Origin: Rhodosorus marinus CCMP1338
Lineage: Eukaryota > Plantae > Rhodophyta
Reading direction: 5' to 3'
Assembly (NCBI GenBank): GCA_029953675.1
Contig: JAMWBK010000003.1
Coordinates: 2,604,001-2,668,000 of the forward strand
Length of the DNA: 64,000 bases
In this document: piece after piece, positions 5,045-31,900 of the stretch
Layout of the letters: each line of letters opens with the position of its first letter
Numbering within the stretch: the stretch's first letter is position 1
Program-made: the position numbers and the translations under genes
The notes under the pieces: model-generated
Databases searched by the model: none
Told to the model about the DNA's origin: nothing
Seen by the model: the letters and a program-made list of their open reading frames with translations, nothing else

Positions 5045-5223
5045 GGAACGTAGGTCTCGAATCCGCGTCTAAAGGTCAATCTCTCTTTTTGGTTCTGAGA
5101 GTGATCCACCCGTTGCTTCTCCATAAGGTCCGGTCCAATCAACTAGAGTGCGTGCGGAACGTACGCTTGCAATCCGCATCTAAGGTTCAATCCGGGATCC
5201 ATCCGTTACCTCTCCATAAGGTC
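5045..5223. repeat. Imperfect two-copy tandem duplication (ggaacgta...ccataaggtc), spacing 111 bp at the start and 93 bp at the end
   Basis: Direct comparison of 5045-5130 with 5156-5223; copy 1 carries an insertion of about 18 bp. Confidence 0.7.
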
Positions 5224-5436
5224 AGGCTCAGTGAAGCAGTCACGCGGGGCATTTCGCATGGACTGGGGTCCCAGGTGCCTGGTAGTGCCTGGTACTCTTC
5301 TTGAAGGATTTCATGGTTTCGCGGGCGATCCTTGATACCTCAAAAGACTGGGATTCACTCTCCTCTGGCCAGTTGGCTCTGAGTAAAAACGATTCGCTCA
5401 TCCTGTTGAATATGCTGATCGAGTATGACGAAAATG

Positions 5437-5872
5437 AATTGGACCGGAAGCATCCAAGCATCCAATTACACACACAAGTGGGAAGAGAGGGAATTGGATC
5501 TCATCCCGTTTAAGGGTCGAACGGTCCTAAAGTGGGAAGAGTGCGTATTGGATCTGGGGAATGAACACTCACCTAGAACATGGGGACCTGAAATAGTATC
5601 ATCAGAGGTAGCAGGTGTTCTTGATAGGCCTATATTGCATAGCGTAGTATGAAATCGTATCCGATATCGTGGATGCTATTTTTGGTTGTGTTCTTAACGA
5701 CACATCGAAGGGTAACCTAGATCTAGATTTAGACTTAGGTTAGCATAATATCGAAGACTAGCTTCGGTATTTAAACGGGAGTTGAACGTGGTAGTAGAAG
5801 GGTAACTTGAAGTAAAGATGACGAAGGTCCAAGGTTCTCCAGGAAGACATCGGTCTGAACTTTGCGGCAACA
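5437..5872 (+). mobile_element. 5' LTR of a Ty1/copia retrotransposon (about 435 bp)
   Basis: 5439-5665 is about 96% identical to the reverse complement of 9738-9964, which follows a PPT. It ends in CAACA just before a PBS and gag. Confidence 0.85.
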
Positions 5873-5875
5873 ATT

Positions 5876-5889
5876 GGGTTATGAGCCCA
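5876..5889 (+). other. Primer-binding site GGGTTATGAGCCCA, complementary to the anticodon stem-loop of initiator tRNA-Met (half-tRNA priming)
   Basis: Complementary to GGGCUCAUAACCC of tRNA-iMet. Same PBS type as yeast Ty5 and Drosophila copia. Lies between the LTR end and the gag ATG at 5913. Confidence 0.85.
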
Positions 5890-5912
5890 TAGATCAAGAC
5901 TAGGATACCAAG

Positions 5913-7049
5913 ATGATTTCTGATGAACGGCAGTTGATTCCAAAGCTGACCGAGGTAAACTATCCGGAATGGGCTTTCCGGATAAAGAGGGCTGCGGAAG
6001 AAGCGAGGTACAGCGGTCCTGTAGGCTCTGACAAAAAGAGAAGAGCACGGCGCTGGTACGGAGAGCAGTGATTCAGCATTAAATTTGATGGTCGAGTCGA
6101 TGGGGACTCAGTATATCGACTGCGCGATGAGATGCGACGACCACGCATGGAAAATATGGACGGAATTAGAAAAGGTTCTCAGATCCACAAGGGTTGAGAA
6201 CAAATTCCGCCTTCTCGATTCTTCAGTTCTTTCGAAATGGATCCCGAGTTGGGGATGAGAGAAAACATCAAGTTCAACCGCATCAGAATGGAGCTGAAGC
6301 TTCTTGGGGACGATGTCAACGATACACACGCGATGTATCGTTTGCTGAAAAGTCTCCCGACGGATTACGCAATTTTTGCGAACATCCAACAAAACCAGAA
6401 GGAGAGTCCATCACTCGCTGTGGTCATAGAAAAGCTTCTTGCAGAGGAGCAAAGCAGAGCACATCGAAAAGGAGACATCGATAGGAAGCCCGAGGTGACG
6501 GCTACGTCAGCGAACAGAGTCGCAAGAAAATCCGGTAAATGTCACTACTGCGGGAAGACAGGGCATCGGAAGAATGAGTGTCGGACGAGGCACCGGGACA
6601 ATGTGGCAAAACGGGGTCAAAGAGAAGCAATGACCGCCGAAGGCCGGGGATCGCTAAAGATCCCCGGGGGGGTTAGCGAGCTGGTTGGTAGACTCCGGGG
6701 CGAGTCACCACATGACCCCAGAAAGGGATTATTTCACGAAGCTGAATAAAATTGAACCACTGAGCATCCGCACAGCAAATGGTGCTGAATACACGGCGTT
6801 TAAGAGGCAGGTTCAGTCCGCGTAAAGATGATGGGGGTCGAGTACGAGATCCAGAACGTGCTCTACGCTCCATGGGCAACGGGCAATATCTTGTTGGTAA
6901 CGGTACTGACGAAGAAGGAATATGTGGTTCGGTTTAATCCAAATATTGAGATTTACAGAGCACGCGATAACTGTTTAGTTGCACGAGGGACCCCTGACGG
7001 ACGAATCAGAGTTCAGGATGTCTCGGAAAATAGTTACGGCTATGTAACC
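5913..7049 (+). pseudogene. Copia gag-protease, frameshifted and truncated after the protease
   Basis: IPKLTEVNYPEWAFRIK gag N-terminus, LLKSLPTDY, CCHC knuckle CHYCGKTGHRKNEC, aspartic protease WLVDSGASHHMT. Several frameshifts are present. Confidence 0.9.
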
Positions 7050-9247
7050 GTAAACTTTACTGGGCAGCTGCCTACTGCAGCGTATCACTAGTGCTACTAC
7101 TATGTAGGGAAAAGCTTACGTTAACCCCGCTACCGGGGTCTCATGCTACGTTCGAAAGAAAAAACAGGGACCAGTGGATTCGCCAACTGGTCCACTCGGA
7201 GAGCGCCTATCGCTGTCTCCGCGTTCCCCTGCCATAATTTCCGGTTGATCTGCGATCTTACATCGCTCTGTTCTAGGCTCCGGTGCAACAAATGCTTGCA
7301 GCTGTCGCGCAGAAACTCCTGTGCCATCTGTCCCGTCCGCCCAAATGTTTCTATTGCAATTGGGATGAACTTGTCATCCGGGTGTTCTATCGTCATCGCC
7401 TCCTTGTAGTGCGCTTTCTTCCACCTCTCTGCACATCTTGCTGCATATCCGTTCTCCCCCTCACTACGCCTCAGATACTTCCCTTGCAGAGGAGACACAA
7501 CCGTCACGTCCAGCGCATACCGTTGAAATGTCCTCGGATGCGTAGCAATGATGTCTGGCCGTAGCCCGTAGTTTTCAAAGTACCTCTCTGGCTCCTGCTC
7601 GATGTCCAGAAAGTTCCACCTGTTCAGCCACCTTGCGATCTCTGTGCATATCTCGTCATGCCTACGTTGCCAGAGGCCAGTCGACGCGGGGCAATGATGA
7701 AAGCGTTGTACTCCGTTTGCACCGTGTTTACCACTGCATCGAGTACACTTTTCCGTCGTCCGCAGCCCCGGAATCGGTAGCCCCAGTAGTTGTAGGATAT
7801 TCACGTGCATTTCCGTCGAGCTCAGCTTTTTCGGCTCCAACGTCGGCAGTTCTCGCAACCAGACTCCCGATCCAGAACCCGCCGCGGGCCTGATTCGAGC
7901 ACGATGTTCGCCGAAGATGCGCGGATTGTTAACCAGGCGTTGGAACACGGAATGGTGTGCCTCCCGAGAGAGAGCTTGTTGTGTAGAACCATTATTCCAA
8001 TCGCCACAGTCTTCTGGGGCGTCTGCTGGGGGGTTTTCCTTCGTCTGCTGCAGGGTGACAAGTCTTCTGATTCGGGGCGGAGTTTCCGGTCACAGCCTGC
8101 TTTGTATCGCTCGAGCAGATGATCGTATCTGGTCTGTGAGTTGTTCTGTGGACCAGTGTAGTCGTGTCGCGGTGTTCGTAGCGGGAGTTCTGTCTGTATA
8201 GACCTGCCTCTGCAGCTCAGCGATGTAAGGCCAGTCGCTTGGATTGCTTCGAAAGGTATTTGTCCAAGCCGAGTAGTATGCGATAGGCTGGATACGCCGT
8301 CGAGTAGCGAACCCCAATCCCCCCCAAGGGCAAGGCAGCGCAATCCGTTCCCACACGTGTCCTAGGTGCTCATCGTCCTCCATGGCAGAGGTAGCAAGGC
8401 CTCCGAGCAAGGTTTCCAAGTGATATCTGGTCATGGTATCCGCCTCCCGTGCCAGACTGCGTCCGAACGGGTAGGATAAGCATCGTAGAAGATAATCTAG
8501 GCGCGTTTCAGCGCAGTACCTGAACAATGCGACCCGTGCGTTAAGTTCATGTTGCGGTAGCTGTGCTATTTCCTTGATGAGCCTTTCGTGCTTATTTTGA
8601 AGCGCACGGCACTCGTGTTCGATATATTGCCGGTTTCCTAGCGGGGTCGAATGGATAGTGACGCCTTCTCGGGTAACATGTACGCCAGGTATCTCGCGAT
8701 TGATGACTCGCGCCGTCGTCAGGGCTCGGCCGAATAGCGTGCATTTGTTGAGTTGCAGGCGGGCCCCAAGAGCTGGGAGCATAGCTCGGCTCCAGGCTAG
8801 TGCTTGTTTCAATTCCTGCAAGGGTCCCACGATCGTAATACCGTCATGGATAGCGACAATCGTTAGATCGGAGAACTTTGTTCGCAGAGCCTTTAGGATC
8901 GGGGCGAGGGCTAGTGCATGTAGCACCGGCCCAAGAGGGTCACACTGTTGTACTCCCGTAGCTGCTTGGAGCGTCAGTCGTGAGTGCTCCGTTTGGTTCT
9001 CTCCAGGTACAGAGCGCCAGCCGCAAAGCGTTGGCGAGTCCACTGCGTCGCTTCCGTAGCCAAGTCTGTAAACCGTCGCAAACTCCGGAAAGTGCCGGTA
9101 AACGAGTTTCTTGGCGAGGCGTCGATCAATCCTGTTGAATGCATTCTCGAGGTCAAGTCTAAGTACCACCGCGTCTGGTTCACATAACCGATGGGCCTGG
9201 ATCGCGTGAAGTGAGCGTTCGCATCCGCCACTGACTCCGATCCCTAG
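7050..9247 (-). mobile_element. 5'-truncated CRE-clade non-LTR retrotransposon (RT plus restriction-like endonuclease), decayed
   Basis: LGIGVSGGCE, LDLENAFNRIDR, GVQQCDPLGP, AIHDG, WGGLG. After a frameshift come a CxxC..H.C finger, RHD, RPD, DVTVV, KKAHY and PIAIETFG, typical of REL-encoding CRE/R2-group elements. Confidence 0.85.
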
Positions 9248-9453
9248 CCAAATACGAGGGGGTAGACAACACACTGATGGATTGGAACCGCAGATTGGGA
9301 CGTGTTGGGAAGGATGTCCTAAGGAAATGATCAATGCGGGAGTACTTTCCATCAACGGATACTTCGCAGGATGAAGCCTGTGACCTTTGTCAAGCGCCAC
9401 GGATGATGCACAAGACGCATCCATCAGTGTGTTGTCTACCCCCTCGTATTTGG
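9248..9453. mobile_element. MITE-like element, 206 bp, perfect 35-bp terminal inverted repeats
   Basis: 9248-9282 CCAAATACGAGGGGGTAGACAACACACTGATGGAT is the exact reverse complement of 9419-9453. The internal TA-CGAGGG resembles mariner-type termini. Confidence 0.8.
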
Positions 9454-9738
9454 TTACATAGCCGTAACTATTTTCCGGGACGTCCTGAACTCTGATTCGT
9501 CCGTCAGGGGTCCCTCGTGCAACTAAACAGTTATCGCGTGCTCTGTAAATCTCAATATTTGGATTAAACCGAACCGCATATTCCTTCTTCGTCAGTACCC
9601 TTACCGACAAGATATTTCCCGTTGCCCATGGAGCGTAGAGCACGTTCTGGATCTCGTACTCGACCCCCATCATCTTTACGCAGACTGAACCTGCCTCTTC
9701 CGCCATGCATTCAGCACCATTTGCTGTGCGGGTCCTCA
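9452..9738 (-). repeat. Inverted second copy of the copia protease C-terminal segment (matches 6761-7049)
   Basis: About 95% nucleotide identity with one 2-bp indel; both copies translate to GVEYEIQNVLYAPWATGNIL...ENSYGYVT. Confidence 0.95.
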
Positions 9739-9977
9739 TCGGATACGATTTCATACTATACTACGCAATATAGGCCTATCAAGAACACCTGCTACCTCTG
9801 ACGATACTATTTCAGGTCCCCATGATCTAGGTGAGTGTTCAGTCCCCAGATCCAAGGCGCACTCTTCCCACTTGAGGACCGTTCGACCCTTAAACGGGAT
9901 GAGATCCAATTCCCTCTCTTCTCACTTGTGTGTGTAATTGGATGCTTGGATGCTTCCGGTCCAACATCCTCCCCCTC
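9738..9977 (-). mobile_element. Polypurine tract (9967-9977, GAGGGGGAGGA) and truncated 3' LTR (9966-9738) of a minus-strand copia element
   Basis: The PPT is directly followed by TGTTGGACC. Homology to the plus-strand LTR stops after about 228 bp. Confidence 0.9.
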
Positions 9978-11480
9978 AGACAAGTATCCAACTTCAAACC
10001 GCTCAAGGTTGCGAGGTGTTTCATCCGTCTACCTGTGATCGCCTTTCTTAGGCGGTCAGCGATCATGTGTTCTGTCGGGCAGTATTCTATCTTCAAGTTC
10101 CCCTGTTGGGTTTGATCCTTGAGCCATAGTTGCTTGATCTCCGAGTGTTTTGTTCTAGGAGTCACTCACTCGGTTTTTACCAACGCCAAGGCCCCACTAT
10201 TGTCCATTCCTATGCGGGGTGTCTGAGTCACTTCGCCCAAATCATTTAAGAGGTTGTATGCCCATATAGCGTCTCGACCTCCTTCATTCGCCGCGATCAG
10301 TTCCGCTTCGCAAGTTGACTGAGAAACGACGCTCTGTTTCTTAGATCCCCAGTTGATCAGATTTCCACCATACAAAGTTGCGTAGCCTGTCACCGATGTT
10401 CTGCCACGTTCGTTTCCGAAACTCGCGTCACTGTAAGTAACGACTTCAGGCGTCGAAACTTTACCATACTTGAGTTCTGCATTTGTCGTTGTACCAATGT
10501 ATCTGCACAGGTGCATGAGGTTCTTCCATGCTTGTTCTGTGGGTGATGCCACTGTTTGCGCTAAATACCTCACTTGCGAAGCTCAGATCTGGTCGAGTCA
10601 TAGTTGCCAAATATAGGGCCTTTCCTACCAGTGCTCGATACTGGTCCACCTGTTGAATTTCCTTTCCCTCATCCGCACCTGCCAGGTTTCCTGCGTCGAG
10701 GGGTGTACTAACATATCGGCCTACCCCCGCTCCGTTGTAGATTTGTTGAGCTAATCCTGGCTGGCTCAACTTCAGCACACCGCGTTCCCGGTCGTACCAT
10801 AATCTCACACCTAGCAGGTCTCTGACCTCACCCAGTTCCTTCACTGGGAATTGCGCCTTGATGAGCCCCATAACTCGATCAATGTCCTTGATAACCGGTG
10901 CTGCTACCAAGAGGTCGTCTACGTATACTGATATTCCTCCTCTGTACCACAACGGAGAGTAATAGTCGAAGACTGCTGGATCGGACTACTGGTGCATATA
11001 CCTCCATAAAGTCCACACCTGGCCTCTGGAGGAAACCCTTCACCACCAATCGCGCCTTTCGTTTGGTGAGTGTCCCCGAAGCATCTCTCTTCGTTGTGAA
11101 GACCCACTTTGTAGCCAAGGGTCTTCTTCCGTCCGGTAGTTCTGAGAACTGCCAGGTGCCCGATCGCTCAAGGACTTTCACTTCCTCATTCACCGCAGCT
11201 CTCCACACCTCCCCGTCAACTCCATTGGTGGCTGCTTGATATGTGCCTGGGTAGACCGCCTCTGCATTTAGGACTTCCGATTGATAGATGTGAGCCAATG
11301 AGGCTTCTTGATTGTCCTCTTGCTTCTTCTTGGCTCTACTCCCTGTTCCGATTGATAGATGTGAGCCAATGAGGCTTCTTGATTGTCCTCTTGCTTCTTC
11401 TTGGCTCTACTCCCTGTTCCGATGTCAGTTCTGCTTCTGCTGCACCGTCTTCTTCCTCCACTGGTCCATTTTCTATTTCT
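9890..11480 (-). pseudogene. Copia reverse transcriptase-RNase H, frameshifted; integrase and upstream parts missing
   Basis: WVFTTK, KRKARLVVKGFLQRPGVDF, VYVDDLL, TRPDLSFA, YSDASF, STCEAELIA, RTKHSEIK and HMIADRLRK. The post-integrase RRSKR..KPHWL linker is present. Confidence 0.92.
11275..11423. repeat. 71-bp perfect tandem duplication inside the copia INT-RT linker
   Basis: 11275-11345 equals 11346-11416. Confidence 0.9.
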
Positions 11481-12015
11481 ATCAGGTGAGAAAGGACAAC
11501 AGAAAATGACAGCGTACAGGAATGCTATTAGCCGACTTTCTGTCACTACTGGATAAGTCCTTTGGTTGCATACTGCGGTTCTTCAACGTTTCTCCCCACG
11601 TGAACTCAAATCTGTTTGTTGTACCATTCTTAAGGTGAAAAGGAGATGAAGGATTTTAGCATTGTTTGCATATGCACCCCTTCGATGTAGTTTTTTCGTA
11701 CTATTTAATGGGCATTTGACCTGCTCCAGAGAGAGCAGAAGGGTGGCATGGAAAAGCGTTAAAACGGGAACTCAAGTGAAATGGTACGCGTGTCGGTTCA
11801 TGTTCATCGTACCGTCAAGCTCCTAGCCTGGCAGCCATCGTGGAAGAGCAGAGATCTTTAAGAAGAGTCTGATAACCTCTCCAAGTGGTGCTTACAGGAC
11901 CGCGACTATTCTATTCACATCATGAGATCGAAGGAGGGTTTTCGTTGAGTCCGCGGGTGTGGCTTTGAACTGCGAACGCTGTTTCCGAGTGTTCGTGTGG
12001 TGGAGGCAGGAAAGG

Positions 12016-12900
12016 ATGGCAGATCGTGAGGTAGAAAAGGGGAGTTTGCTGCCATCTGCTGTCTCTGATGAGAGAGGGCAATGGGACGCGATCGACCCGG
12101 ATGACATTTTGCTATCGAATGAGTTGCTTGGGAAAGGGGCGTTCAGCGAGGTGGTTGCCGGTCTTTGGGGAGGTACACCCGTGGCAGTCAAGAAAACGGA
12201 GGAGACTGGCGTGGAAGAATTTCATCGCGAGCAGGAAACTTTATGTGCGCTGAGGCATCCCAACATAGTTTTGCTTCTTGGGGTCGTTCCCTCCCGCTTG
12301 TGGATTGTTTTCGAGAGGCTTGGTGGCAAGGTAGACGTGGAAATGGTTGCGAAGAATTTCTTGACAGTAACTACTGTGGCTTGTGACGTTGCAAAGGCTA
12401 TGGCGTACGCACACAGTCGAGGCGTAATCCACAGAGATATCAAGCCGTCGAACTTGCTAGAGGACGGAAGAGGTGCGTACAAAGTCTCGGATTGGGGACT
12501 GAGTCGATTTATCGACACTGAGCGCAGAATGTCCGGAGACACGGGCACGTATTCCTTCATGGCGCCGGAAGTGATAAAGTCAGAACGCTACGGATCTAAA
12601 TGCGACGTTTATTCTTATGGAATATTAATGTGGACATTGCTTACTGGAAAGACAGTACCCTATCCCGTCTTCACACCGGAACAAGCAGCCGATGGAGTTG
12701 CGAAGAATGTCCTCCGGCCGGAACTACCAACCCATGTCAACCCGGATTTCACAAAGCTCATGCAGTCTTGTTGGGACAATGAACCGTCGAGTCGACCGGA
12801 TTTCAGGGAAATTGCCACCAAAATAATTGCCATAGATGCGGAGTCGAAAATGAGGAAGAAGGAAAAGCTGCCGAAGAAAAAAAGCTCTTTCTGGGGGTAA
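12016..12900 (+). CDS. Tyrosine-kinase-like (Raf/MAPKKK-like) protein kinase, intronless
   Basis: GKGAFSEV, VAVKK, LRHPNIVLL, HRDIKPSNLL, SDWGLSR, GTYSFMAPE, CDVYSYG, CWDNEPSSRPDF. Confidence 0.9.
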   Translation: MADREVEKGSLLPSAVSDERGQWDAIDPDDILLSNELLGKGAFSEVVAGLWGGTPVAVKKTEETGVEEFHREQETLCALRHPNIVLLLGVVPSRLWIVFERLGGKVDVEMVAKNFLTVTTVACDVAKAMAYAHSRGVIHRDIKPSNLLEDGRGAYKVSDWGLSRFIDTERRMSGDTGTYSFMAPEVIKSERYGSKCDVYSYGILMWTLLTGKTVPYPVFTPEQAADGVAKNVLRPELPTHVNPDFTKLMQSCWDNEPSSRPDFREIATKIIAIDAESKMRKKEKLPKKKSSFWG

Positions 12901-13868: not shown

Positions 13869-14316
13869 ATTGGAACCGTCCCCATTCTTTGTTATTTTCC
13901 TTTTCCTGTTTTGCAACTGTCAGTAAAAACGAGATAATCGCGACCAGTACAATTGTCTTTTCTGTTTCTCCGTTCAATGTCCTCCTATTTCGTTTGGAAT
14001 CCCCCCTACCATGACTCAACCGCGGGGTCTGACGCTAATCATTATTTGGTTATAATCCAAAACACTATATATCACAGCCCAAGTCCGTGGCCATCAAAAC
14101 AAAAACAAAAAACAAACACACACATACAACAACAGAATGTCGTTCACGAACCCCAGGCTCCCCCGTTCTCCCCACAATCACGCAGGAACGAAGCTGCCAA
14201 AAAATCAAAAAATCCAAATAACTTCCTTACTCCTCTTGGGCGGCCGTACAACAAGTGAAATCCTCAAAAAAAAGGATCGCTGACAGTCCCCATGAACGAA
14301 TAGAGATCTAGTAAAA

Positions 14317-14438
14317 ATAGTTCAAGAGCGGATTTTCTTCCAATTTGTTCAAAAACAATGAACCAGTGTTTCTATAACAGATAGTTCAAGTGCGGATTTT
14401 GTTCCAATTCGTTCAAAAACAATGAACCAATGTTTCTA
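14317..14438. repeat. 64-bp period tandem duplication in an AT-rich intergenic region
   Basis: atagttcaag.gcggatttt.ttccaatt.gttcaaaaacaatgaacca.tgtttcta at 14317 and 14381. Confidence 0.85.
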
Positions 14439-15348
14439 GCGTAGAACAACGTCCGCACTAAACTTTGGCTGAAAATATTCATTATTCAATTAGCTTTCGT
14501 AGATGTATTTTTAGAACCCGGATGGTTGAAAAAGTGACAAAATATATTGATGTATAGAGCAATAATATTCTAATATATAGTAATTATATTCTATGATTTA
14601 ATAACTTAGAGAAAACATAGTATATTAATGTCAAAAATATAGATATTATTTCTAAACGGGCGTTGACAGCCATTTATGCGGACAATCTGCAAGAGAGGTG
14701 CCAATGGTTATGCGTTTTCCTCCTTTACAGTTTTATTTCAGGAAAACCAAAAACCACTAACGATTGGTTTACATGTGGGCTGCCAATTGTTGACGAAACG
14801 TGGGTGACGCTTAAAATATCGTATTTATAGTATTTTGTTGTTATACATGAATGCTTTGTTTCTTCTGCAGATAATTGAGTATAAACTTCTTTAATATATA
14901 TTGAGTGGGTAGAAATATGGTAAACAATAAGGTATGTTTTGTATAGGAGTATCAAAAGATAAATATGTGTCTAAATGTCATATCCGTCTTTCATGGATTG
15001 TTGTTGGGCTCACTCTTGATGATCGATTTTCGAAGCCCTTGCAAAACGCCTACGGAATCGTTTTCGAGGTTCCACCTTTTCGCCTTTGTTTTTGGACTGC
15101 ATATCCTGGGTTGGGAGGAGGGGGGAATTGGCAGAGAAGAGCGGCCCCAACACCTACCGACAGTCAAGAAGTCAAAATTTGATGGGTACCGACATCCTTC
15201 TTGCGCGCAAGTATTTGTTGCCTATATATGTACCTGTTCGAGGACTACTCAGATGAAAAAGTTGGAAAATGGCCCTAGCAGGTACTCGAGCGAGACTTGG
15301 GAACGTAAGGGACACTAGAAAGGCGAATACAATTCATGAGCAGTGCAT

Positions 15349-15921
15349 ATGGATAACGTAGGACTGTATGATTCCCCGACTGGGTCGTTGGATTCACACT
15401 TTGACACGGATGATGGGGCCAACTCACTCAATGGCTATACTTTGAAGCGAGCGATAAGTCGGGAGATGGAGGCCTTCTGCTATATGAATGATGACCTGGA
15501 GAGTGGGCACTCCTGCAAGGGCGATTTTGAAGTGTTTTCGGCTGGTAAGACTTCAGCGTTGCCGTTGAAGAGGTTTGTCGAGAGGATGATGAAGTATATC
15601 TCCTGCTCCAATTCGGCATATGTTGTTGCCTTTTGCTACATTCACAGAATCATGGATCGCCAGAAAGACCTTAGAATCTGTCCTCATAATTCTGAGAATC
15701 TGCTGTTCGCGGCGACAGTGACTGCCGTAAAGTACTTGGAGGATCGTGTGCACACAAACGCGTTCTACGCGAAGGTTGGGGGCCTCAGCGGGTACACGGA
15801 AATGAATCGGCTTGAATTCCAGTTTTTGAAATTGATGAACTTCGACCTTGCCGTCCCCGCGGAGGAATACCGCACCATGGAGAGCTACCTTTGCGGCGTC
15901 GGCGCAAAAGAGCTCTATTAG
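15349..15921 (+). CDS. P/U-type (Pho80-like) cyclin
   Basis: FVERMMKYISCSNSAYVVAFCYIHR, KYLED...NAFYAKVGG, EMNRLEFQFLKLMNFDL. Confidence 0.9.
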   Translation: MDNVGLYDSPTGSLDSHFDTDDGANSLNGYTLKRAISREMEAFCYMNDDLESGHSCKGDFEVFSAGKTSALPLKRFVERMMKYISCSNSAYVVAFCYIHRIMDRQKDLRICPHNSENLLFAATVTAVKYLEDRVHTNAFYAKVGGLSGYTEMNRLEFQFLKLMNFDLAVPAEEYRTMESYLCGVGAKELY

Positions 15922-16939
15922 AGACCAAATGCTGATCGAGCATATCTACACATACTAGGATCAATAAAACTACATATTTATCTTCTGAACGAAGATGACG
16001 CGCTGTCTACCCACAACAAAGTGCCTAGCAACTACGTCAGCTTGCTTGACTGAGTTGAGCTGGTTTGCCTACTGCTGCGATTAAGATGAGTTCGGCTAGT
16101 AGCTGTGATGCTGCGATTGGTTGTCCTGCGATGTATATCGTTGTTGGTGTGCTGTTCAAGATCGGCAATATACTGGTCATGCTGCTTCATTGTACTTTCG
16201 TGCTTGAGTAACGACACTAGATGGCGACCACACTCATGCTCAATTTCTAGTGTTCAACTCAAAGACAAAACTAGGGCGTAAAATCATTATTTAGATAGAG
16301 GCTCTAATTATTTCCATTATACAAATAAGATTAGTCTGAACGTCCTCAAAATACTGCCAACAAAGTCTCAGGTTTTCATCTATCTACACCAATCCAAAAG
16401 GATCACCTTTTTTTTTTCCTAAAGATTCAAAAAAAAGAGGGCTTTCAGCTTTCAAGTTCACATTTCTCGACCCCCCCTCCAATCATATGACCACTATTGG
16501 GTGCCTAAATTATGTCTCCGTTGTCATTGTTTTTTTCGAAGAATAACAATCGGGCGGTAGCAATTCCTTTTTCTCGAATATTTTGGAAGGTGAATGAGGG
16601 GGCCCTGTGATCTCCGGAACGTTGTATTGGTGAAGAATTACTGAATGTTTGTTTTGGGAACATTGGACTGTTTTAGCGGGGCCCAATAAATTCTTTTAGT
16701 AAAGGATAAAAGCCTCAGATTGTGGTCATTAGCTTCTTCGAGAGCGGTTTTTGCTTTTTTCGGCAGTTTCGTGGATGCCAAAGAGACGCAGAGTTCCTCG
16801 CTGGGGAGGGAGGAGAGATGGAGCATGTCTTGAGACGATTGCGAAGGAGTTCCTTGTAGCGTTCTTCTTTTTGATTTTGCTTTATTCTAGGTGCAACATC
16901 CAAAGACAGATTGTTTGAGAAAATTGGAAGGAATTCACT

Positions 16940-18403
16940 ATGAATTTTGAGTTGGCTTTTGGGATTTCGTCCATAGGGACTGGGTCCAAGCCACGCGGGC
17001 TGACGGGCCGTACCAGGCATGGAAAGAGGGGGTTGGTGTCTATGAGTCAGAACAAGGCGCCTCATGCTGCGCCATTGAGCGAAGTTACGATGGATAACTT
17101 TAAGAGGAAGATCAACCTGCTCGGTTCAACGGGTTCTATCGGGACTCAAACTCTTGACATTGTGGAGGAGAGGCCAGAGAACTTTGAGGTTGAGGCGCTG
17201 GCCGCCGGATCCAATGTTGAGATGCTTGTGGAACAAGCTGTGAAGTTCAATGCTAAATTGGTTTGCGTCCGCGATGAGGCGAAGTATAGTGAATTGAAGG
17301 AGGCCCTCGAGAGCGCAGGATGGAAGGGTGATGTCGTAGCAGGGGAACAGGGAGTGGTAGAGGCGGCCAGGTATGGAGATGCGGATGTTGTCGTAACTGG
17401 CATTGTTGGTTGTGCTGGGCTTCTGCCAACAATTGCTGCTATTGAATCAGGAAAGGACATTGCACTAGCCAACAAGGAAACTCTAATCGCCGGCGGCCCC
17501 GTCGTTGTGCCTTTGCTGAAGAAGAACAATGTCAACATGACTCCAGCGGATTCGGAACATTCAGCCATCTTCCAGTGTCTGCAAGGCCGTCATGATGGAA
17601 CGCTCCTGAAAAAGATTCTTCTCACTGCCTCCGGCGGAGCTTTCCGGGACTGGAAGGCTGAAGATCTGAAGAACGTCACAGTGCAGGACGCATTGAAGCA
17701 CCCCAACTGGGACATGGGTGCCAAGATTACCATCGACTCGGCCACCTTGATGAACAAAGGATTGGAAGTAATCGAAGCACATTATCTTTTCGGTGTTGAT
17801 TATGATGACATTGAGGTCGTTGTCCACCCGCAGAGCATTATTCATTCCATGGTGGAGTTTGGAGATACATCAGTTATTGGCCAACTTGGTTGGCCGGACA
17901 TGAGACTCCCGATCGTCTACGCACTGTCATGGCCCTACAGATTGGACATGAAATACGACAGATTGGATCTTGTGAAGCTCGGGTCGCTCACTTTCCGTGA
18001 ACCGGACAGGAAGAAGTATCCAGCTCTGGATCTTTCTTATGCCGCAGGTATGACTGTTTCCCTTCTCTCAGCGACTCCCTTTGCTTCATTCGCATTTACA
18101 AAATGAGGCGTATCTCAGTAGTTTTCAGTCATCCTGACTTGCGTCTTTTGCGTTATCTCCGTGAATGAATTTACAGGCCGAGCTGCTGGTACGATGCCAT
18201 GTGTTCTGAACGCTGCGAACGAAGCTGCTGTTGAGCTATTCCGAGCGGAGAAGATTCATTATTTGGACATGCCCAAGGTGCTTGAATCAGTGATGGAGAG
18301 ACACAAGTCTGAATGGAAAGAAAACCCTACATTGGAGGACATTGTAGCTTTCGACAAGCTTGCCCGAGTTCATGCGAAAGAATTCATTGCCGTCCCTCTG
18401 TGA
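16940..18403 (+). CDS. dxr: 1-deoxy-D-xylulose 5-phosphate reductoisomerase, plastid-targeted; intron 18048-18176
   Basis: [70 protein letters not shown]. Confidence 0.97.
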
Positions 18404-31104: not shown

Positions 31105-31900
31105 ACCCGTGGCATCTTTCTGCCTCCATAAACTCATCGCCCAGCGCGGTTCAATCGCGACACCACCCCCGAATCGTATCTCATCAAATCCCATTCTGTA
31201 TTGGACATCAAACCGAAACGGAAATGGAAAGAGGAAAACGGCGGTCGGCAGAGCTGCCCTTCTAACCCATGGCACAATCTATACCTCCAGGAACTAACTC
31301 AGATCTCCATCATAGATCAATTACCAAACTCAAATCACATCTCACTCTAATCCCATTCTGCATTGCACATTTAAGCGAAGCGGAAATGCCAAGAGGAAAG
31401 CGCGGGTCAGCGAGGCTGCCATCCCAAGCCGTGGCACAATGTTTATCTTCACGAACTAGCTCATCATCCAGTCCGGAGACCAATCGCCACACTAAACCCG
31501 AATCATTTCTCACTCATATCCCATTCTGCTTGAACGGTTGAATCGAAACGGAAATGCCAAGAGGAAAAGTGCTGGTCAGCGAGCCTGTCATCCCAACCCG
31601 TGGCGCGATGTTTACCTCCAGGAACTATGTCTTATTCTTGTTCAGAGATCAATCGGCACACCAAACCCGAATCACATCCTCACCTAATCCTATTCTAGCC
31701 TGGACGTTGAAGCGAAATAGAAATGCCAAGAGGAAAAGTGCCGGTCAGCGAGCCTGTCATCCTAAACCGTGGCGCAATGTTTACCTCCAGGAACTATAAC
31801 ATCTTCTAGTTCAGAGATCAATCGCCACCACCAAACCCGAATCACATCCTCACCTAATCCCATTCTGCATTGGTCATTAAAACCGAAATGGAAATCAAGC
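31105..31900. repeat. Degenerate tandem array, about 5 units of 162-171 bp
   Basis: An anchor of the form GAAATGCCAAGAGGAAA or a variant recurs at about 31220, 31382, 31550, 31719 and 31890; AATCCCATTCTG and CCCGAATC recur with the same period. Confidence 0.9.

Follow-up and report, generated by a model that had tools for sequence, protein, structure and literature searches.

A broken copia retrotransposon with a flipped back half and a later retroelement insertion in the red alga Rhodosorus marinus

How does a retrotransposon come to face itself in a chromosome, and does the resulting inverted repeat have a role? This question is raised by a 6-kb locus of the red alga Rhodosorus marinus CCMP1338 (GCA_029953675.1), located on contig JAMWBK010000003.1 within the window that we analyzed, i.e. 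the whole 64,000-nucleotide stretch from position 2,604,001 to 2,668,000. An initial annotation had described it as a head-to-head copia fold-back with a CRE/MITE spacer between its LTRs, and as a candidate for silencing its own family by hairpin RNA. Our analysis shows a single broken copia retrotransposon; its back half was flipped, and a second retroelement subsequently inserted in the element. Probably, a Ty1/copia copy was split within its integrase gene, had its 3' part turned round at the cDNA stage and was captured by host repair, leaving the locus as its fossil; today it is most likely an inert relic. Contig 3 extends megabases either side of the locus through ordinary genes. The annotated neighbours, an S41 protease on the left (minus strand) and a kinase on the right (plus strand), are both transcribed away from it.

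Two halves of one copia element

The comparison is based on the three family loci that were found by a copy search via annotated proteins, two of which are flipped. Besides the window locus, these are L004, a second locus on contig 7 with ~79% identity, the same flipped topology and different junctions, and the colinear copy L002, to which the window locus and L004 are each ~76-77% identical. Every family copy seen is degenerate, at 76-79% identity. The window locus comprises the following parts:

5430-5437, repeated at 11502-11509: GAAAATGA, an 8-bp repeat that may be a target duplication of the entire 6-kb unit (weak evidence)
5439-5872, plus strand: left LTR, full length by alignment with L004 and L002, ending in CAACA (5868-5872)
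5876-5889, plus strand: primer binding site (PBS) GGGTTATGAGCCCA, 3 nt (ATT) past the LTR, conserved across the three loci
5913-6749, plus strand: degenerate gag, annotated as NDN08_003518, in which several stops and frameshifts interrupt the coding sequence
6683-7049, plus strand: protease, consisting of the frame-shifted active-site motif WLVDSGASHH (6683-6712) and then the beta-barrel; the left arm includes 6761-7049
7050-9247, minus strand: non-LTR retrotransposon of the RLE type (the former "CRE"), antisense to the left copia half
9248-9418, plus strand: left half resuming, GAG-pre-integrase/integrase zinc-finger region (PF13976)
9248-9282, plus strand: last piece of the left arm
9283-9418: fold-back loop, 136 nt
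9419-9738, minus strand: inner right arm, inverted pre-integrase (9248-9282) and protease (6761-7049)
9738-9966, minus strand: right LTR, first ~229 bp only (TG and the 227-bp arm), with protease position 6761 as its immediate neighbour
9967-9977, minus strand: polypurine tract (PPT) GAGGGGGAGGA, abutting the right LTR and identical in L004
9978-11335, minus strand: degenerate, frameshifted RNase H and RVT_2 reverse transcriptase, annotated as NDN08_003520
11336-11501, minus strand: integrase-RT linker remnant at the outer end of the flipped half, with L004 homology to ~11467

By domain content, the order of elements on both strands agrees with the one first proposed, as do the two LTRs facing each other and the partial nature of the right one, which keeps the first 227 of ~433 bp. 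The plus-strand half reads LTR-PBS-gag-protease-pre-integrase, with matches to gag (PF14223), a zinc knuckle (zf-CCHC) and the protease beta-barrel (PF22936). The minus-strand half consists of the integrase-RT linker, RT (RVT_2, PF07727), RNase H, the PPT and the 227 bp of LTR. Reversing the flipped half restores the Ty1/copia gene order (gag, protease, integrase, RT, RNase H), and the two halves represent complementary parts of one element with an overlap confined to the fold-back. The integrase core is absent and ~750 bp of integrase are missing; rve and SH3-like domains were found in L004. Stops and frameshifts occur throughout. In addition, the RT region carries a ~260-bp deletion at 10934/10935 relative to L004, and a perfect 71-bp tandem duplication (11275-11416) lies partly within the linker remnant.

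The LTRs of the family share the consensus TGTTG...CAACA, of which the left LTR of the window locus lacks the first TG. An LTR end at 5665 was rejected, as the alignments with L002 and L004 extend the LTR to 5872. TATA-like motifs are located in the left LTR at ~5631 and ~5770. The PBS is nearly identical in the three loci, with a single change in L004. [quoted passage not shown] The priming mode would correspond to the half-tRNA priming of Ty5 and Drosophila copia (PMC5371799), from which the present element differs by its red-algal lineage.

With regard to the inverted repeat, the complementarity described initially was reproduced: the LTR segment 5439-5665 (10 mismatches in 227) and the protease segment 6761-7049 (95%) both recur in reverse complement within 9452-9964. 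Two arm pairs stand out, namely 5439-5665/9738-9964 (227 nt, 96% complementary) and 6802-7049/9452-9699 (248 nt, 97%), the latter within a protease pair of 289 nt and 95.2% by BLAST (6761-7049/9452-9738); the inner arm ends are 2402 nt apart. Since the right arm is contiguous, 5666-6760 is absent from it. Moreover, the right arm extends beyond 9452, its portion down to 9419 being complementary to 9248-9282, and it is therefore no coincidence that both arms seemed to end at one and the same copia base. A site-specific insertion of the RLE element does not explain this common end, because the arms continue past that base. With the insert removed, arms of ~325 bp enclose a loop of 136 nt; at the breakpoint, the left half is copied back on itself for ~325 nt.

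The supposed MITE at 9248-9451 did not withstand this comparison. Its segment 9250-9418 (plus strand) extends the protease frame as PF13976 (30.5 bits), colinear with the uninterrupted copia sequence of L004, and its supposed right terminal inverted repeat is the start of the inverted arm. A search within the window and the loci yielded no further copy.

Over 546 aligned positions, the gapped alignment of the full arms contains 22 substitutions and three gap columns. These are genuine paralogous differences rather than long-read noise. LTR and protease arms have diverged equally (4.4% and ~3.8%), which fits a single origin event per locus. CpG transitions are enriched between the arms, accounting for 9/22 substitutions; this would fit methylation of the locus and thus some form of silencing. 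RIP-like mutation was considered and rejected (14 transitions and 8 transversions, with the RIP context absent).

The retroelement inserted in the left arm

The RLE element sits in the left arm at 7049/7050, where it stretches the loop to 2.4 kb. In one frame, interrupted by an in-frame stop at 8090-8092, it encodes an RT and a C-terminal CCHC/PD-D-K endonuclease on the minus strand. The element is 5'-truncated at 9247 and lacks ~341 N-terminal codons; its 3' UTR runs from 7132 to 7050 without poly(A). The RT match (RVT_1) reaches 25.3 bits, below the Pfam cut-off of 29.6, and the best solved relative, the R2 protein 9nl2_A (E = 0.028), can be aligned over the CCHC, RHD, PD and D-V-T-V motifs. 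The sequence is very divergent, with two database relatives only, both from Rhodosorus.

With regard to the original assignment to CRE, the evidence places the element in the R2/CRE/NeSL group with a restriction-like endonuclease (RLE), but not in a particular clade. Like R2, CRE/SLACS/CZAR, NeSL, R4 and Hero, the element appears to encode, in one ORF, an RT and C-terminal to it a CCHC motif and a PD..D..K restriction-like endonuclease; it is devoid of a poly(A) tail and was 5'-truncated upon insertion. In contrast to R2/CRE-type elements, it inserted into a copia element and not into rDNA or spliced-leader genes; its target is copia protease/pre-integrase, as opposed to the spliced-leader RNA genes of the CRE clade.

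Another copy of the element, at L003, is 93% identical; homology to it extends from 9247 to the conserved 3' end at 7044-7050. Furthermore, the uninterrupted (empty) target site GGCTATGTAGCCAAAAC is present in L004. Taken together, the empty site and the homology limits to the other copy identify the RLE element as a simple insertion. The inner right arm is likewise uninterrupted across the insertion site, and a 72-aa gene model is annotated within it at 9454-9754. The motif GTAAC(C/T) precedes the two 3' junctions seen, which may hint at an insertion preference. Twin priming was rejected as a source of the 38-bp inverted repeat 9245-9282/9419-9456, as the intervening 136 nt have no counterpart in another RLE copy, in either orientation, and represent copia pre-integrase.

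A second flipped locus and the origin of the inversion

At L004, the plus strand runs from the LTR through the integrase core to just beyond the third catalytic residue (...ENGGEFV), and the minus strand from the C-terminal, SH3-like part of the integrase to the LTR, with ~30 codons missing between the halves. This locus has a fold-back of its own, with 77-nt arms and a 26-nt loop. Its arms are 94-97% alike in ungapped stretches and 91-92% overall by BLAST; those of the window locus are 95-96% alike, against only ~79% identity between the two loci. The flipped half starts with CAACA+ATT, i.e. the LTR end plus the three bases preceding the PBS, which is the terminus of an unprocessed linear cDNA. 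A junction at this very terminus points to a rearranged, "suicide"-type cDNA that was captured in the genome.

The proposed sequence of events would begin with a flip on extrachromosomal cDNA, by aberrant strand transfer, end-joining or formation of an autointegration-like "suicide" product. Host repair would then have captured the rearranged cDNA in the chromosome, and the 5'-truncated, dead RLE element would later have inserted in the left arm at the window locus. The junctions of the latter show no replication landmark, with one LTR cut at position 227 and the left LTR lacking its first TG, and a chromosomal inversion with deletions is a possible alternative there. A clear target duplication around the 6-kb unit was sought, with no result beyond the 8-mer GAAAATGA; such 8-mer matches are expected by chance in the search space, and only its position is suggestive.

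In canonical integrase-mediated autointegration, a processed CA end is joined with a 5-bp target duplication. Neither a processed-CA join nor a short target duplication is found at the window locus or at L004, which retains CA+ATT and adds the 77-nt fold-back; integrase sequence was lost at both loci. Inversion products with an inverted portion between two LTRs have been described for Ty1 and the Arabidopsis copia element SISYPHUS (PMC7197481). The two loci resemble these autointegration products in having two inverted LTRs separated by an inverted 3' portion, and their breakpoint falls within the integrase region, which is also where, near the central PPT, autointegration of Ty1 is concentrated (PMC7197481). 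The differences are equally specific: the known products are extrachromosomal circles, whereas the present ones are chromosomal, at two loci; their junctions are not integrase-like (ATT kept in L004, LTR truncated in the window), the 5-bp duplication is absent, 90-750 bp were lost, and each junction bears a fold-back copy of 77 or ~325 nt.

The window locus thus offers a well-resolved case of a retrotransposon copy becoming an inverted repeat, by a flipped 3' half and copy-back at the breakpoint. Two loci show the flip, and one still bears the trace of a cDNA end that was not processed. Virus-like particles are known to contain inversion or "suicide" products; chromosomal fossils of such products have, to the best of our knowledge, seldom been described. 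It is plausible that fossils of flipped cDNA are a general source of hairpin loci. The fraction of flipped loci (2/3) exceeds what an occasional accident would lead one to expect and could reflect a family-specific mechanism or retention by selection.

Hairpin capacity and other readings of the locus

If RNA crossed the locus, it would form a hairpin of ~290-325 bp. In line with the folding suggested at the outset, ViennaRNA predicts pairing of 280/289 arm nucleotides. This capacity is probably a by-product of the origin of the locus and does not speak for a role.

The initial annotation went further and proposed a candidate source of hairpin RNA similar to Mu killer. In a working form of this model, a transcript from an LTR or a cryptic promoter would fold and be cut by Dicer, the resulting small RNAs would act in trans to silence the copia family, and convergent transcripts would add the RLE family. 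Its account of Mu killer was accurate: in maize, this inverted duplication of part of a transposon gives rise to a hairpin RNA homologous to the family (PMC3440606). Long inverted arms with 95-96% identity, the predicted fold and a complete left LTR agree with such a function, as does the enrichment of CpG transitions between the arms. Rhodosorus transcriptomes contain transcribed relatives of both transposon families (P0125, P0126), DCL and AGO were reported in the red alga Chondrus, with loss reported for Cyanidiophyceae only, and the second flipped copy at L004 has one neighbouring gene pointing into the locus. The present locus shares with Mu killer a partial inverted duplication of transposon sequence and, in principle, a long hairpin RNA. 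Mu killer, however, derives from a DNA transposon and owes its transcription to a flanking gene, and both its siRNAs and its heritable silencing of active MuDR in trans have been demonstrated, whereas the annotated neighbours here point away and, by their directions, would provide no read-through crossing both arms. Further evidence against the model is the right LTR, which consists of its first 227 bp only. With respect to targets, 0/269 perfect 21-mers of the protease arm occur in L004 or L002, and those of the LTR arm amount to 21/207 in L004 and none in L002. A search among the annotated proteins for active, near-identical targets returned only the degenerate 76-79% copies; all copies seen are dead, and the transcriptome relatives are merely 54-81% identical in protein. 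The same identity range rules out the transcriptome proteins P0002 and P0126 as products of these loci. The RLE part lies in the loop, outside the stem, and would be single-stranded in a hairpin, so that silencing of this second family would need convergent transcription. Overall, we regard a working silencer as rather unlikely. If the arms made small RNAs, the locus would represent the first natural trigger of transposon silencing reported for a red alga, a group in which, as far as we are aware, RNAi and the control of transposable elements are almost unstudied. A literature search on RNAi in Rhodosorus found nothing, and exact look-ups in public assemblies had no record of a 554-aa chimeric ORF or a 170-aa gag ORF.

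Two further histories of the inversion appear improbable. One consists of two independent copia insertions, head to head or nested, that were each truncated later, the protease duplicate being a third fragment. Nested fragments are frequent in islands of transposable elements, the 4% difference between the arms is within the range of family members and the window junctions (LTR 227, protease 6761) carry no landmark. Against this, the halves are complementary with minimal overlap at two separate loci, and LTR and protease arms are equally diverged. The right arm is, moreover, colinear from protease to pre-integrase and ends 136 nt before the left half stops, which is the geometry of a fold-back.

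The other history, a single ancient palindromic rearrangement that was copied as DNA to a second chromosome, would have its arms kept alike by gene conversion and its differing junctions made by lineage-specific deletions. Palindromes often convert and lose their centres, and the window locus and L004 (~79%) resemble each other a little more than either resembles the colinear L002 (~76-77%). It is not a likely course of events, as it needs at least four deletions in addition to gene conversion, involves an unexplained transfer of a non-mobile 4.6-6 kb unit whose flanks at the two loci share nothing, and requires one L004 deletion end to hit the cDNA terminus exactly by chance.

Very unlikely, in our view, is the more far-reaching idea that the copia family repeatedly yields fixed, hairpin-forming flips which are kept since their hairpin RNAs feed RNAi or methylation and drive the family extinct; if true, this would be a natural red-algal counterpart of Mu killer, made by a retroelement. 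Finally, an assembly artefact, i.e. a chimeric nanopore read formed by fold-back or an erroneous join within the RLE repeat, might be suspected from the ONT and NextDenovo assembly (polished with Pilon) and from the repetition of the RLE element in the genome, but is extremely improbable: a fold-back artefact would give identical arms instead of 22 substitutions with only three gap columns, the 2.2-kb RLE insert is below the 6-kb size selection used for nanopore sequencing, the contig continues on both sides for megabases of ordinary genes, and this topology recurs at L004, an independent locus that lacks the RLE element.

Anatomy of the inverted copia locus

The genome of the unicellular red alga R. 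marinus comprises 31 Mb with 15% repeats; assembly GCA_029953675.1 was produced by NextDenovo from nanopore data, followed by three rounds of Pilon polishing (PMC10250338). Outside the broken Ty1/copia copy at 5.4-11.5 kb, the window carries ordinary genes (S41 protease, kinase at 12016-12900, cyclins, DXR and a hydrolase), and both annotated neighbours read outward from the copia locus. Downstream of a DUF1907 gene, a unit of ~169 bp occurs three times in tandem (31368-31837; 69-87% identical over 132 nt). The inverted arrangement described in the initial annotation is confirmed, and its anatomy is corrected as follows:

5439-5872, plus strand: left copia LTR, without the first TG
6761-7049, plus strand: protease segment repeated in the right arm
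7050-9247, minus strand: spacer non-LTR retrotransposon with restriction-like endonuclease (RLE element)
9248-9282, plus strand: copia pre-integrase segment repeated in the right arm
9283-9418: loop of the fold-back
9419-9964, minus strand: inverted right arm

The plus strand contains gag (PF14223, zinc knuckle) followed by the protease beta-barrel (PF22936), and the minus strand the RVT_2 and RNase H region, both as initially annotated; every reading frame at the locus is broken. The left half comprises LTR, PBS, gag, protease and pre-integrase, the right half integrase-RT linker, RT, RNase H, PPT and LTR, and an integrase core is absent throughout the window. Judged from the sequence, the two halves are complementary and represent one copia element, flipped.

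Alignment with two further family loci, L004 and L002, defines the family LTR as TGTTG...CAACA. ATT and then GGGTTATGAGCCCA, a block that hardly varies among the three loci, follow the left LTR. This block appears complementary to the anticodon stem-loop of initiator tRNA-Met and fits the priming mode of Ty5 and Drosophila copia. Half-tRNA priming is known from both elements (PMC5371799). Since the alignment places the LTR end at CAACA (5872), the right LTR, already described as partial, retains only the first 227 of ~433 bp and continues straight into protease position 6761. Of two TATA-like motifs, the retained part includes the one at ~5631 but not the one at ~5770. Two 40-nt units (5103-5142 and 5196-5235; 80% identical, 93 bp apart) adjoin the LTR on the left.

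The inverted repeats were found as annotated, with 10 mismatches in 227 nt between the LTR arms (5439-5665 and 9738-9964) and 95.2% identity over 289 nt between the protease arms (6761-7049 and 9452-9738); divergence of the two pairs is equal (4.4% vs ~3.8%). The inner arm ends lie 2402 nt apart. In the complete right arm, LTR 5439-5665, protease 6761-7049 and pre-integrase 9248-9282 are all present as reverse complements. Without the RLE insert, the fold-back has ~325-nt arms and a 136-nt loop.

The interruption of the left half became apparent by comparison with L004, a further family copy on contig 7 found by a gag-protease search. Window 5439-7049 aligns to L004 9342-10950 and window 9245-9418 to L004 10946-11119, directly following; the uninterrupted site reads GGCTATGTAGCCAAAAC. 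L004 reads straight through, and therefore the RLE element is a plain insertion into an otherwise unbroken copia sequence at 7049/7050. When the flanks of the insert are joined, the plus strand prolongs the protease frame (...GYVT-KYEGVDNTLMDWNRRLGRVGKDVLRK...), and the KYEGVDNTLMDWNRRLGRVGKDVLRK region scores as GAG-pre-integrase domain (PF13976, 30.5 bits; cut-off 28.4). Consequently, the region 9248-9451, previously regarded as a MITE, is copia pre-integrase colinear with L004 up to 9418, and its supposed right TIR (9419-9456) represents the first part of the inverted right arm. Twin priming of the RLE element as source of the 38-bp repeat was rejected, because no match to RLE sequence was obtained for the 136 nt in either orientation.

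In addition, the integrase-RT linker in the flipped half contains a perfect 71-bp tandem duplication (11275-11416; 78 nt identical in all), which either arose very recently or is an artefact of the consensus in the nanopore assembly. A chimeric open frame of 554 codons (8090-9754, minus strand) starts with an ATG inside the right LTR, crosses the inverted protease arm and the antisense pre-integrase loop, and enters the RLE reverse transcriptase without a change of frame; in the genome annotation, only a 72-aa model is given here (9454-9754).

Origin of the flipped copies

The main point of interest is the recurrence of the flipped structure. In L004, the plus strand reads from the LTR to the integrase core (HHCC finger and D, D, E residues, ending ...ENGGEFV), while the minus strand begins in the C-terminal, SH3-like part of the integrase, continues with RT and RNase H and ends with a full LTR. 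Compared with an intact copia integrase, only ~30 codons are absent between the halves. The breakpoint carries a fold-back with 77-nt arms (11273-11347, 11374-11449) and a 26-nt loop. The flipped half starts with CAACAATT, the LTR end plus the three bases preceding the PBS. This is the terminus expected of an unprocessed linear cDNA, whereas an integrated 3' LTR would not have those bases after it. A host-sequence direct repeat of 118 bp (~93% identical; L004 9223-9339, 13961-14078) bounds the whole flipped unit; its length far exceeds that expected of integrase target duplications and points to insertion through repair synthesis. L002 (8947-11235) is colinear but internally deleted, and in it the N-terminal part of gag is joined ~35 bp on to RT-RNase H-LTR; therefore, normal orientation is also present in the family. 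Here, a 62-bp block (9910-9971) is perfectly repeated, inverted at 11623-11684 and direct at 17704-17765.

"Suicide" inversion products, in which an inverted portion separates two LTRs, have been described for Ty1 and in virus-like particles of the Arabidopsis copia element SISYPHUS (PMC7197481), an organization shared by the Rhodosorus flipped copies. However, the junctions of the latter differ from those of integrase chemistry and show an unprocessed or truncated end, loss of sequence and a fold-back copy. Because of these junctions, we prefer an explanation by aberrant strand transfer or by end joining of a broken copia cDNA, which would have been flipped in this way and then captured at a chromosomal break. 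We interpret the window locus as a flipped, copied-back copia copy into which the RLE element later inserted. For this locus alone, a chromosomal inversion with deletions is also possible. The flipped loci have a common topology with different junctions, and arm identity within a locus (window, 95-96%; L004, 94-97% in ungapped stretches and 91-92% overall by BLAST) contrasts with ~79% between window and L004. One rearrangement per locus, at or before insertion, would most simply account for these data; an old shared palindrome with arms kept alike by gene conversion is a more costly alternative. An assembly artefact is unlikely, given that the arms differ by substitutions and not homopolymer indels, the 6-kb nanopore size selection exceeds the length of the RLE insert, normal genes lie on the contig on both sides, and L004 has the same topology without the RLE element.

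A possible role in silencing

The initial annotation proposed that the locus silences its own copia family by hairpin RNA, similar to Mu killer in maize. This function is possible but unsupported. In RNA of 6700-9800, the predicted fold has 280 of 289 nucleotides of the arm paired. Furthermore, 9 of the 22 substitutions between the arms (5439-5665, 6761-7049 and 9248-9282 vs 9419-9964) are CpG transitions, although such positions account for only ~1/10 of the arm, and CpG observed/expected is 0.79 in the right half (9248-11500) compared with 1.05 for the left half and ~1.03 for flanking genes. These values may reflect cytosine methylation, which would be compatible with some form of silencing. 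However, Mu killer is transcribed via a flanking gene reading into it (PMC3440606), whereas both neighbours of the window locus read away; moreover, the right LTR is truncated, and the RLE element lies in the loop, where a hairpin would leave it single-stranded. At L004, unlike at the window locus, an amino-acid kinase/acetyltransferase gene (14265-16025, minus strand) reads towards the flipped unit, and therefore read-through into an inverted-LTR locus is geometrically possible.

Potential targets also argue against this function. Searches with RT-RNase H and gag-protease gave only degenerate Rhodosorus copies, and the family looks dead; coverage comprised the annotated proteins and four loci, so that copy numbers are lower bounds and the absence of a target refers to the copies seen. 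Among these, the protease arm has no perfect 21-mer in common with L004 or L002; of the 207 in the LTR arm, 21 occur in L004 and none in L002. Rhodosorus transcriptome ORFs P0125 (840 aa) and P0126 (524 aa) are relatives of both element families, so related lineages are expressed in some strain, but the copia relatives reach only 54-81% protein identity and are not derived from these loci (RLE relative, 68%). DCL and AGO have been reported in Chondrus and their loss for Cyanidiophyceae only; we found no published literature on RNAi in Rhodosorus.

The RLE element and its relatives

The spacer contains a minus-strand reverse transcriptase (RVT_1) within a 706-codon frame (9250 to 7133) with a single stop at 8090-8092. 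Only two database relatives were found, both from Rhodosorus. Homology to a 93% identical copy at L003 on contig 7 starts at window 9247, and therefore ~341 N-terminal codons are missing. A second L003 fragment has the conserved 3' end ...CCCAGTAAAG..TAC.GTTAC, which extends to window 7044-7050. Among relatives with a solved structure, the R2 retrotransposon protein matches best, with a weak alignment (E = 0.028) spanning an RT motif and the CCHC, RH(D/N), PD and D-V-T-V endonuclease motifs. Because of these aligned motifs, we assign the element to the restriction-like-endonuclease type (R2, CRE, NeSL group); the initial assignment to CRE is not established at the level of the clade.

At both RLE 3' junctions seen (window 7044-7050, L003 8721-8727), GTAAC(C/T) stands directly beside the element end and may reflect a target preference or bases of the element itself. 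RLE-type elements of varied divergence occur at L003 (8640-8726, 9776-11580) and L002 (4571-5811, 12313-14085, 17749-18717), clustered near contig ends (last 25 kb of contig 7; 40-60 kb of contig 3), and may form a subtelomeric array. At L003, the next element has its first coding match ~1 kb downstream of an RLE 3' end and reads in the same direction.
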